Sequence record: JN849462.1
DNA: 64,000 bases
Reading direction: 5' to 3' (one strand)
The position numbers and the translations under genes are program-made. Shown in pieces: positions 50,111 to 52,599 of this stretch (positions within the stretch are counted from its first letter, which is position 1; every line of letters starts with the position of its first letter). The notes beneath the pieces are model-generated. The model had not been told where the DNA came from and searched no databases. It was given only the letters and a program-made list of their open reading frames with translations.

Positions 50111-50357
50111 AGACATTCGAGAATTGTTTTATCGTCTTTCCTTAAATCTCAATTGACTATCTCGATGTTTCTCATCAAGAGAATACCCATGATTCGGCAT
50201 GAGACCTATTTCGTTTAACAGTACGAACACCGTCTTAATGGTCATTTCCTACCACGAGAATGCGACAGGCTCACGTCATCACTGAGAAAGCAGCTAGTGC
50301 GCCTCATTACTATTAAAGTTTGCTTCTTTGATTAGTAATAGTTGCTGTACAATGTCT
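50111..50357 (-). ncRNA. about 247-nt CAGCAA-motif RNA A
   Basis: Terminal AGACAUU/AAUGUCU helix followed by GUA-CAGCAA; 3' block homologous to RNA B. Confidence 0.65.
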
Positions 50358-50368
50358 TATTGCGAAAT

Positions 50369-50457
50369 TGGCGGAGATACTGGGAATCGAACCCAGAGAA
50401 CGCTATTAACGTCCGACACCTTAGCAGGGTGCTGTCATACCTTTAGACCATATCTCC
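50369..50457 (-). tRNA. tRNA-Ser(GCT)
   Basis: Cloverleaf, long variable arm, CCA. Confidence 0.9.
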
Positions 50458-50462
50458 GTAGA

Positions 50463-50642
50463 TCATTTCTTACCACGCTCTGCTTTGCTAATCTCGACAG
50501 CAGCGATTTGCGCGTTGGCTTCTTTCTCAGTGTCATGAGTACCAAGTACTCGACCTTTAGATGAAAGAGCAACCCATTTGTCGCCACGCTTCTCGACTTT
50601 CTCAACAAGCTTGTGGTATTCATCAAACGTTTTAAGTTTCAT
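50463..50642 (-). CDS. 59-aa late protein (absent from the ORF track)
   Basis: TATAAATA at 50668-50675; MKLKTFDEYHKLVEKVEKRGDKWVALSSKGRVLGTH. Confidence 0.6.
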   Translation of the reverse strand: MKLKTFDEYHKLVEKVEKRGDKWVALSSKGRVLGTHDTEKEANAQIAAVEISKAERGKK

Positions 50643-50898
50643 TTGTCATCCCTCAGTTAGTTTATTGTATTTATAACTGAACGACTTTTAAACAGTGGCA
50701 TGCTGCTCTCATGCTCAGACACATATTTGCTCTTATTGCAGGCGTGTGCCACGCGCAGCGCAGATCCCTTTTGATAATTTAATGACCAGCGGGACTCTTA
50801 GCAGGTCTTACACATAGCCTTTCAGCTATATCTTCTTTTAAGACCATAGTGTCGTACGGTCTAATCACTCTCTTTCGATTCGCGTTGCTAAGTGAATT

Positions 50899-50975
50899 TG
50901 GTGCCCAACCCGAGATTCGAACTCGGATCATCTAGTGTTTGAAACTAGCGCCTCTGCCAATTGGACTAGTTGGGC
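50899..50975 (-). tRNA. tRNA-Leu(CAA), short variable loop
   Basis: Cloverleaf, loop TTCAAAC, CCA. Confidence 0.85.
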
Positions 50976-51090
50976 TTGAATGAGCTGCCGCAACTCTTTA
51001 ATCCCTAACGCCTGTCAGCTTTCGCCCGGCTGAGACCGTTTTCAACGGCGGTAGTCTAGCTTCGTGTAGAACGCGGCTTATGCTAGAGTT

Positions 51091-51167
51091 TGGTACGCAC
51101 GGGCGGATTCGAACCGCCATCCCTGAGATTTTAAGCCTCATGCCTCTGCCAATTGGACCACGTGCGC
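51091..51167 (-). tRNA. tRNA-Leu(TAA), short variable loop
   Basis: Loop CTTAAAA, CCA. Confidence 0.88.
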
Positions 51168-51169
51168 AG

Positions 51170-51243
51170 TGGAGCCCGAACAGAGAATCGAACTCTGACC
51201 GCGGGATTTGCAATCCCTCATACTTCCATTATACGATTCGGGC
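51170..51243 (-). tRNA. tRNA-Cys(GCA)
   Basis: Loop TTGCAAA, U73, CCA. Confidence 0.88.
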
Positions 51244-51346
51244 AATTTGTTAGTGCATTGCATGGACTACTGGCGATCTTAATGGGTATCTCAAGCATTC
51301 AGAATTCCCATGCGCTACTACAATGCTTTTTTCGCTAAATGCACTT

Positions 51347-51426
51347 TGGGGTGACAGACGGGGATCGAACCCGCATCTTCCGGAATCACAACCCGGGGGT
51401 ATTTCCACTTCACCCACTGCCACACC
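51347..51426 (-). tRNA. tRNA-His(GTG)
   Basis: Loop TTGTGAT, G-1/C73, CCA. Confidence 0.85.
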
Positions 51427-51477
51427 AAAGTACACTTTGGGATGTTTACGACATCAAACGAATGCGCTCCCTGTGCA

Positions 51478-51717
51478 TTAATCAGTTTTCTTTAAGTAGA
51501 TACTATCAGGCGATAGCTCTCTCGTAAACATATTTTTGAAATAAATTTCGATGTCATCAGAAGTTGTTGAAGACTCAATTTCAAGAGCACGTTCTAAAAT
51601 CTTACCGCGTTTATAACCAGCGCGCCAACAGTCAAACATAAGTCTGTCCATGCGTTTCAGTTTTTCAATTTGGTTTTGATTTACGTATTCGTGAGTTTCA
51701 AGTAATACAGGCGTCAT
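51478..51717 (-). CDS. hypothetical protein in the tRNA cluster
   Basis: GAG RBS; fills an inter-tRNA gap. Confidence 0.45.
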   Translation of the reverse strand: MTPVLLETHEYVNQNQIEKLKRMDRLMFDCWRAGYKRGKILERALEIESSTTSDDIEIYFKNMFTRELSPDSIYLKKTD

Positions 51718-51740
51718 AATTTATTTCTCATCATAAAGAA

Positions 51741-51814
51741 TGGTAGTCCCTAGTGGAATCGAGCCACTTCTTTCTCTGTGTAAAAGAGACGTACTGCCAT
51801 TATACTAAGGGACC
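51741..51814 (-). tRNA. tRNA-Val(TAC)
   Basis: Loop TTTACAC, CCA. Confidence 0.88.
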
Positions 51815-51819
51815 AAAAT

Positions 51820-51893
51820 TGGAGCGGGTACACGGACTCGAACCGAGACGAACGACTTGGAAGGACGTCATGCTACCATTACATCATACCCGC
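51820..51893 (-). tRNA. tRNA-Gly(TCC)
   Basis: Loop CTTCCAA, U73, CCA. Confidence 0.88.
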
Positions 51894-52080
51894 ATTGTTA
51901 ATCTGAAGCGTCGAACAAATCACGTATTGCACGCAGATTCGTAAGCTCTACAGTAAGTGTTCTTATAAAGAACGGGTTGGTCTCTTTCGCGAGACGATTT
52001 TCAACACAGCGAATCTTATCGCGTATGTTGCCCTTGCTTAGTGTAAAGTAGTCATGCTTCTTATCCTCTTTGCTTGAATT

Positions 52081-52157
52081 TGGTGGAGACACCGATACTC
52101 GAAATCGGATCTAATGGCTTATGAGACCATTGCTCTACCACTTGAGCTACATCTCCA
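52081..52157 (-). tRNA. tRNA-Met(CAT), elongator-like
   Basis: Loop CTCATAA, CCA. Confidence 0.85.
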
Positions 52158-52193
52158 AAATCAGTAATTAACTCATTTAATCGCACACGGGCT

Positions 52194-52365
52194 GACACCA
52201 TATATTCATGGTCTGAGCGAGGAACCACATAGTGGGTACTGTCACCTCATCTTAGTTTTGATTGTTTTACATGACGATAACTAGAAACGTTCATAATAAT
52301 GCCACGCGATACTTCCTGTATCACGGCTAACTGAGTTAGCAAACTTGCCTTGCGGCTGTAGTGTC
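52194..52365 (-). ncRNA. about 172-nt structured RNA C, variant motif
   Basis: Terminal GACAC/GUGUC; UACAG-CCGCAAGG-CAA; several internal hairpins. Confidence 0.4.
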
Positions 52366-52385
52366 GTTTCCGACGAATTAAGTAC

Positions 52386-52599
52386 AGACAATACCGAAGT
52401 GTTTTTTCGTCTTTTGCATTAATCGGAGTTGACTAGCTTATTGATTCTCAACAAGCAAATATCGTCTGTTTCAGCGACGCGCCTATCTGACTATTTCTAG
52501 GCAGAGAGAATCTTTCCTTTCAAGCTGCGCCGAAGCACTGCCCAGGTTAAGATCATTACCATTTTTAAGTAATTTTCAATTGTTTGCTGTATATTGTCT
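52386..52599 (-). ncRNA. about 214-nt CAGCAA-motif RNA B (paralog of A)
   Basis: AGACAAU/AUUGUCU helix followed by AUA-CAGCAA; shared 3' block. Confidence 0.65.

Follow-up and report, generated by a model that had tools for sequence, protein, structure and literature searches.

We analysed a 64,000-nucleotide (nt) stretch of DNA (the window) that matches Vibrio phage phi-pp2 with 100% identity (JN849462.1; window position 50000 is record position 174000), and find that it encodes two conserved structured RNAs, RNA A and RNA B, closed by a terminal module that co-occurs strand-specifically with the DUF2828 gene family across unrelated phages. Together with a smaller RNA (C) and a candidate further member (D), A and B are probably Y-type RNA partners of a Ro60-like protein that the phage encodes at 45522-46958. 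Phage phi-pp2 is a KVP40-like, T4-type phage of the genus Schizotequatrovirus, and the setting of these RNAs is a minus-strand cluster of about 30 transfer RNA (tRNA) genes (50369-58919; ARAGORN and Rfam), where the sites of A and B are bare of annotation in both the phi-pp2 and KVP40 records. All window features given below lie on the minus strand.

The original prediction had described two paralogous noncoding RNAs with conserved, covarying ends, a common 5′ start and an AUUACU...GUAAU hairpin, and each of these features was recovered on the minus strand. RNA A (about 249 nt; 50109-50357) and RNA B (216 nt; 52384-52599) share the 5′ pattern AGACANNNTACAGCAA, which is exact only at 50342-50357 and 52584-52599; the next best site in the 64 kb has one mismatch. 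The terminal helix P1 pairs 50351-50357 with 50111-50117 in A, where the ACAGCAA junction occupies 50342-50348, and 52592-52599 with 52386-52393 in B. Both RNAs finish in a conserved CUGU (A 50109-50112, B 52384-52387), and given this end the predicted 5′ boundaries stand while the 3′ boundaries move to 50109 and 52384. The 3′ blocks, which had been called homologous, align with each other and form a 3′ domain (A 50109-50187, B 52384-52463) composed of a hairpin (Pn), UAGUCAA and a 4-base-pair (bp) helix closing the conserved loop UUnAnGnAAAGACGAnAAAACAnU. Minimum-free-energy folds of both RNAs pair the ends and form the AUUACU/GUAAU hairpin. Relative to shuffled sequences, the folding energy of B gives z = -3.06 and that of A z = -0.8, which is not significant, and the case for A therefore rests on covariation rather than energy.

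Homologues of A and B, collected by sequence similarity and not by structure, occur in 11 phages (KVP40, V09, QD01, VS2, ValKK3, VH7D, nt-1, CZ01, 1.081.O, 6E35.1a and F86), and both RNAs are kept in every related Vibrio strabovirus examined, including where copies of A are down to about 73% identity between phages. A MAFFT alignment of 21 homologues from these phages shows pairing maintained by compensatory changes. Pairing of the 7-bp P1 holds in 21/21 sequences. Three of its positions have changed on both sides: A-U/U-A distinguishes A from B, 1.081.O has U-A in place of C-G, and F86 has G-C in place of A-U. The covariation noted between the two paralogues reaches homologues found by sequence. 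In the 3′ block, all sequences pair the 4-bp helix (100%), using GC/CG/GU and CG/AU/UA combinations, and the preceding hairpin Pn has double changes at 7/8 pairs. When the 3′ partners were shifted by one to three columns, pairing fell from 89% to 27-45%. A single compensatory event in 6E35.1a and F86, where U-A has become A-U, hints at a possible UAGUC/GACGA pseudoknot in the 3′ domain. A model of the A/B 3′ domain (R1) detects only A and B in the window (94.8 and 100.8 bits) and no relative in 79 other DUF2828 loci; an nhmmer profile of the 3′ block found nothing beyond the Vibrio clade, and an IMG/VR scan for its exact pattern returned KVP40 only; on these searches the domain is confined to this clade. 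The Rfam search foreseen for A and B was run and matched neither to a family, at the gathering threshold across the whole window or at E-value (E)<=10 across 49900-52900. Retron, 6S, tmRNA and ROOL/GOLLD-type identities were without support from Rfam and ARAGORN.

The conserved ends are real but not private to A and B, and the two paralogues are not alone: the same module closes RNAs C and D, recurs in a messenger RNA (mRNA) leader in the window and in hundreds of copies in other phages, and accompanies a Ro60-like gene that in phi-pp2 lies 3.15 kb downstream of A. It consists of (A)AG, a stem of 6-8 bp, two nucleotides, ACAGCAA, a body, the 3′ strand of the stem and (C)UGU, and a descriptor of the module also recovers A and B. 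RNA C (61 nt; 53895-53955), a minimal member between a small open reading frame (ORF) and tRNA-Asn, reads AAGCAAUC-UU-UCAGCAA ... GAUUGC-UGU and scores 42.2 bits (E 4.8e-8) against R2, a covariance model trained on 31 minimal elements, of which 29 lie outside the Vibrio clade; orthologues of C are present in all Vibrio relatives. RNA D (90 nt; 55040-55129), 5-7 nt past tRNA-Tyr, is a candidate and the weakest family member (UAGCUUGC-AU-ACUGCAA ... GCAAGC-UGU; R2 16.5 bits, E 0.11), with orthologous matches in seven relatives and a fold that closes its ends. The predicted RNA ends read uAAGACA...GUCUGU in A, GAGACA...GUCUGU in B, AAGCAA...GCUGU in C and UAGCUU...GCUGU in D. Vibrio relatives also carry extra tRNA-like members of 105-112 nt with a T arm (L005 5377-5481, L006 6286-6397 and L007 8145-8254), absent or altered in phi-pp2; in the first of these, from phage 1.081.O, positions 5377-5445 score 34.9 bits on the tRNA model. 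Another extra member that is absent or altered in phi-pp2, a 58-nt minimal form in L008 (1365-1422), has a stem, GUAAUC/GAUUAC, that covaries with the GCAAUC/GAUUGC of C.

Elsewhere, the module follows the DUF2828 family with an absolute strand bias. We examined 79 further IMG/VR loci encoding homologues at 46-55% identity, placing the gene on the plus strand in each. A strict descriptor requiring G-N5-NN-ACAGCA, with a complementary N5-C no more than 300 nt away followed by N-G, gave 78 sense-strand matches and 0 antisense matches, against 1-4 in shuffled sequence. The stems show covariation: a stem pair that the descriptor does not demand is A-U in 20 elements and U-A in 9. R2 likewise found 63 elements in these loci, all on the sense strand. 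At a typical locus an element of 55-60 nt, such as UGGUUCC-UU-ACAGCAA...GGAACCA-GG, lies about 30 nt past the stop codon and is often followed directly by a 230-260-nt element with identical closure; elsewhere the module hairpin occurs instead in the gene leader (L035, L042, L056 and L063), and other loci contain 95-140-nt forms, some with a T arm and then a D arm (L043 and L058). Loci from bacterial genomes and metagenome-assembled genomes gave 14 R2 matches, sense only and mostly 100-430 nt upstream of the gene. Among named phages, R2 detects three tandem elements just upstream of the gene in Listeria phage LP-125, three between the first tRNAs downstream of it in Salmonella phage Felix O1, one just upstream in Campylobacter phage F361, and elements downstream of the Ro-like gene in mycobacteriophage MiniLon. 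The protein family itself is present in 710/50,697 phage records and spans >6000 clusters at 50% identity; its members in mycobacteriophages (31% identity) carry the annotation 'Ro-like RNA binding protein'. In the marine and freshwater contigs L016-L033 (for example L018 11502-11756), the RNA of about 230-260 nt right after a 57-nt element has a well-conserved interior and the closure GGAUCG-GU-ACAGCAA ... CGAUCC-CGU, and is outside Rfam. No homology of this RNA to the interior of A or B was detectable, and an AGUCAA...AAGACG likeness between them is unsupported because neither R1 nor nhmmer found anything.

The phi-pp2 member of this gene family encodes a 478-amino-acid protein with DUF2828 and DUF7788 domains (45522-46958; Pfam; PHROG 850, 'RNA-binding protein'). 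It is predicted to form a Ro60-like ring of TROVE-type helical repeats plus a vWA domain: with an AlphaFold2 model (pLDDT 77, pTM 0.76), the top seven Foldseek matches in the PDB were all Ro60, at full length (TM 0.51-0.58, E 3e-6 to 6e-4), and full-length matches were made only to Ro60 structures, including Thermus phage phiLo Ro60, Xenopus Ro and human Ro60. The gene is on the same strand as the RNAs, with the 3′ end of A (50109) 3151 nt upstream of its start codon at 46958 and B 5.4 kb away.

A copy of the module also lies in the 5′ leader of this gene (46951-46995), where GACAUU (46988-46993) can pair with AAUGUC (46954-46959), a segment containing the start codon (46956-46958), and the loop holds UUACAGCAA plus the Shine-Dalgarno sequence. 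This leader is the sole other near-match to the A/B 5′ pattern in the window (46979-46994, same strand), scores 14.4 bits with R2 and is also found by the module descriptor. Across five diverged lineages the flanks vary, and the invariant parts are GACATT..ACAGCA and AATGTCAGC (in RNA, GACAUU-NN-ACAGCA and AAUGUCAGC). Upstream is a strong sigma-70-type early promoter (47008-47035; TTTACA-16-TATAAT, 11/12 matches) that is conserved in the alignment. In phage CZ01 (L012 9927-10520), a GIY-YIG homing endonuclease gene sits immediately upstream of the DUF2828 gene and displaces the usual promoter and leader; this natural variant could reveal if the gene can do without the leader mimic. An RNase H-like gene (PF04308, YkuK-type; 44947-45477) lies directly downstream of the Ro60-like gene, an adjacency kept in Vibrio relatives, and a gene with a cREC (cyclic-phosphate-processing receiver) domain, of a family described previously (PMC7824862), lies between it and RNA A (48046-48405).

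For RNAs whose function the original prediction had left blank, these observations suggest a specific model. We propose that A-D would be made as part of the tRNA-cluster transcripts and released by the enzymes acting on the neighbouring tRNAs. Each of A and B was said to follow a tRNA, and A indeed begins 11 nt past the end of tRNA-Ser(GCU) (50369-50457), immediately 5′ of it, and B 61 nt beyond tRNA-Arg(UCU) (52661-52736). An intrinsic terminator (50075-50095), kept after A in all relatives, ends the tRNA/RNA A transcription unit, leaving no gene downstream of A within it. Upstream of B, a TGCTT box followed 12 nt later by TATGGT (52605-52640) resembles a T4-type, MotA-dependent middle promoter by eye, a likeness for which we make no claim; if it were real, B could start its own transcription, and KVP40 encodes asiA. 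The closing module (stem, NN-ACAGCAA and (C)UGU) is the putative protein-binding site, judging from co-occurrence. Specific function would reside in the variable bodies, which measure 200-250 nt in A and B and, on the analogy of Y RNAs, could act as a gate on the Ro ring or connect it to a further enzyme or substrate. The leader would be a miniature mimic of the module, pointing to autogenous control of the kind known from ribosomal-protein and T4 gp32/RegA mimicry: as the leader helix covers the start codon, free protein would repress its own translation, with the RNAs competing for the protein. The role would most likely be RNA surveillance or counter-defence during infection.

Several points weigh against this assignment. 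The ends, binding and expression of RNAs A-D are predictions from sequence, and the protein does not reach Pfam TROVE and has a model of moderate confidence (pLDDT 77). Where bacterial Y RNAs have a GNCGAAN0-1G/CGAA 5′ motif, A and B instead have (U)ACAGCAA, with CGAA present on the 3′ side only in A-type copies and nowhere in B. Whereas these Y RNAs contain a tRNA-like domain with T and D arms, A and B have none detectable, and no YrlA or tRNA match was found for either at E<=10 (the YrlA gathering score is 69 bits). The role of the A/B 3′ domain is left unexplained by comparison across the family because the domain was found only in the Vibrio clade. In the leader, the helix is part of the minimum-free-energy fold yet weak alone (-3.5 kcal/mol, z -0.1), and conservation of its 3′ strand is not independent evidence because that strand is coding. 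Finally, the homology that links the model to the counter-defence protein gp130 of phage Bas63, considered below, is inferred, as it is synteny with Felix O1 that suggests gp130 belongs to the DUF2828 family.

An unlikely alternative is that the module serves generally in the processing or stability of tRNA-cluster transcripts, for instance by stopping exonucleases or guiding an endonuclease, and is unrelated to the DUF2828 protein, with the two co-located because both favour tRNA surroundings. RNAs A, C and D do abut tRNAs, the Felix O1 elements lie between tRNAs, and DUF2828 genes often adjoin tRNA clusters. However, coordinates give no hint of an intervening tRNA for many metagenomic elements about 30 nt past the DUF2828 stop codon (tRNAs were not systematically mapped there), the module also sits inside the 5′ leader of the gene in two separate clades, its strand bias relative to the gene is absolute, and the T4 tRNA cluster with rnaC/rnaD is without it. 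We likewise assign a low probability to A and B serving mainly to titrate a host factor as decoys or sponges (for instance a tRNA-directed nuclease, a defence sensor or an RNA chaperone), with the Ro-like protein only a stabilising chaperone or uninvolved. The tRNA-like bodies in relatives (L005 5377-5445; T and D arms in L043 and L177), the counter-defence role reported for the protein family and the nearby cREC and RNase H-like genes would all suit such a function, but A and B themselves are without tRNA mimicry and nothing points to a host target, and the idea overlaps the Y-type explanation rather than excluding it.

Micro-proteins encoded by A, B or both, or cis-regulatory leader functions to which conserved structure is secondary, are very improbable. 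An ORF of 20-25 codons in B is found in KVP40-like and nt-1-like phages and one of 38 codons in A in some genomes, and hypothetical proteins are annotated there in QD01 and PVA8. As originally predicted, none of these is convincing: no ORF is conserved across the homologue set, the A ORF is broken in five phages (V09, QD01, nt-1, 6E35.1a and F86) and the B ORF survives only in close relatives. Overall, ORFs are lost or replaced in V09, QD01, nt-1, 1.081.O, 6E35.1a and F86 while the helices are kept by compensatory changes, one-nucleotide indels occur among close relatives, and the terminator after A leaves its unit without a downstream gene. That A and B are decaying tRNA genes or non-functional spacers alike only through recent duplication can be all but discarded, because, even though the cluster also holds pseudo-tRNAs, covariation maintains the pairing, both paralogues are kept where copies of A are only about 73% identical, and the module recurs in unrelated phage families.

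The tRNA cluster and related loci contain other RNA features. Further unannotated spacers of 100-250 nt lie at 52157-52383, 50645-50898, 50976-51090 and 51244-51346, and may be additional structured RNAs; the spacer after B (52157-52383) opens with a conserved GUCG-GAAA-CGAC hairpin, and no R1, R2 or Rfam match was obtained for any of the four. Three tRNA-shaped genes of 113-121 nt (58807-58919, 58676-58796 and 57002-57114) score 50-55 bits on the Rfam tRNA model and were missed by ARAGORN; their acceptor, D and T arms are normal, their anticodon region contains an insert of about 45 nt with a common CUGA(C/U)AAG, and the equivalent regions of relatives give weak YrlA matches (L006 756-882 and L007 2408-2477). 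The public records contain two annotation errors: the phi-pp2 record (JN849462.1, L002) has tRNA-Asp on the plus strand, whereas it is actually on the minus strand (window 53430-53505), and the 1.081.O record (L005, MG592456.1) has tRNAs annotated on the strand opposite to the Rfam matches. The LP-125 locus looks densely RNA-centred, with a ROOL match (RF03087; L178 2471-3022; 87.4 bits, gathering 99.1) about 1 kb upstream of the DUF2828 gene and three module RNAs, and an RtcB-like ligase gene 1.3 kb downstream. A full tmRNA match (L043 8605-9054; 75.4 bits) adjoins the tRNA cluster and module RNAs of its metagenomic phage contig, and 1.081.O has a partial tmRNA-like match (L005 5811-5886).

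The closest known counterparts of the proposed particle are Ro60 and its Y RNAs. Such particles have been described in animals, in some bacteria and in a few phages, and their RNA partners are hard to find; a simple signature of sequence and structure now points to likely partners of a very large Ro60-like family, one that reaches model phages of E. coli and Salmonella (Felix O1 type), Listeria, Campylobacter and Mycobacterium. Chen et al. 2014 recognise bacterial and phage Y RNAs by a position <=4 kb from Ro60 on its strand, by a terminal stem accompanied by a 5′ motif and by a tRNA-like domain (PMC4201824). Like YrlA/Y RNAs (RF02553), often several of which occur per locus, A is on the same strand as a Ro60-type gene and within 4 kb of it. 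As in Y RNAs, A and B have their two ends paired (P1 in 21/21), a single-stranded motif adjoins the 5′ strand and the body is variable. By contrast, A and B are 2-3 times longer than YrlA-type Y RNAs, and the partner of Y RNAs is a TROVE Ro60 while that proposed for A and B is a DUF2828/DUF7788 protein, Ro60-like by predicted fold. Relatives that combine A/B-type closure with a tRNA-like domain reach 28-38 bits on the YrlA model, below its gathering score. In MiniLon, three tandem RNAs downstream of the Ro-like gene each have a GGAC.../...GUCC-AGU closure plus ACAGCAA, and the middle one, with a T arm and a D arm, gives a sub-threshold Rfam YrlA match (37.7 bits, E 7e-5); module RNAs of L043 with both arms score 38 and 34.8 bits.

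Two phage systems provide precedents. The Ro60 of phage phiLo binds two adjacent Y-like RNAs (Yrl1/Yrl2) and recruits host PNPase (PMC12135203). In the Felixounavirus Bas63, the Ro60-like gp130, encoded directly upstream of tRNA genes, is reported to counter Ppl defence, and the authors of that preprint speculated that some Bas63 'tRNAs' might be Y RNAs (bioRxiv 10.1101/2024.10.10.617714). Felix O1 has a DUF2828 homologue (45% identity) directly upstream of tRNA genes with module RNAs between the first tRNAs. Whereas no RNA partner was identified in the Bas63 system, phi-pp2 offers the candidate partners A-D, and the module yields concrete candidates for the 'missing Y RNAs' that the Bas63 anti-Ppl factor was proposed to have. 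The model also predicts an mRNA-mimic autoregulatory loop and would account for some long-unexplained spacers in phage tRNA clusters.

Phage T4 encodes stable RNAs of unknown function, species 1/2 (rnaC and rnaD), that are cotranscribed with its tRNAs and processed from the same precursors. These lie at the distal end of the T4 tRNA cluster, directly after tRNA-Arg, much as B follows tRNA-Arg(UCU) and A ends its cluster. We rejected rnaC and rnaD as homologues: they are without the stem and ACAGCAA...CUGU, R2 finds nothing in the region, and the T4 RNAs are positional analogues only.

A more distant comparison extends to eukaryotes. Class I RNAs, reported as unique to dictyostelids and of unknown function, are about 60 nt long, start with AAG, have a 6-bp terminal stem of variable sequence with compensatory changes and, after its 5′ strand, an 11-nt motif, and end in CUGU (Kjellin et al. 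2021, PMC7919456). Class I RNAs (RF01414) and the phage RNAs share a variable-sequence stem with kept pairing, the (A)AG start and the CUGU end, with a variable and A-rich body in Class I. The 11-nt motif, CCUUACAGCAA, with near-invariant U3, C6, C9, A10 and A11, is exact in many phage elements; the corresponding sequences in A (UUGUACAGCAA) and B (AUAUACAGCAA) each keep 4/5 near-invariant positions, and that in C (UCUUUCAGCAA) keeps 5/5. A curated Class I sequence, GUUGAC-CU-UACAGCAA...GUCAAC-UG, matches the phage consensus of R2, aAGGUUcCUUACAGCAAAC...GgAACCUGu (aAGGUUcC-UU-ACAGCAA...GgAACC-UGu). RF01414 is the best non-tRNA Rfam match of several phage elements, covering the full model each time and always below the gathering score of 41.5 (L043 30.8, L007 29.1 and L017 28.2 bits; C in the window 27.4, E 0.0028 in a 281-nt search), and A and B have no RF01414 match at E<=10. 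The two groups also differ in size, Class I RNAs usually being 42-65 nt (DdR-66/67 104-140 nt) and A and B 216-249 nt, and in context, with RNA polymerase II/III-type eukaryotic genes, a DUSE promoter and the binder Rnp1A on one side and a bacterial-type tRNA operon on the other. Because some defining features of YrlA and some of RF01414 are lacking, we keep A-D outside these two Rfam families and file them with the Ro60/Y-RNA kind.

Among the papers searched, none links Class I RNAs with Ro60, TROVE or phages, and DUF2828 proteins in plants are mentioned in papers. We tentatively suggest, at somewhat less than even chances, that a distinct DUF2828-type branch of Ro60 proteins recognises its RNAs by this module, and that the module defines one RNA superfamily from phages to Dictyostelium Class I, which would span minimal phage RNAs of 55-60 nt, tRNA-like YrlA-type forms, 200-260-nt forms such as A and B, and Class I itself. 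If so, Class I RNAs would be Y-type RNAs with a missing DUF2828 partner and not unique to social amoebae, and the phage ribonucleoprotein would be a device for counter-defence or RNA surveillance, autoregulated via an mRNA mimic. Sharing this module with phage RNAs also makes the function of Class I RNAs, open since 2004, directly testable by way of a DUF2828 partner.

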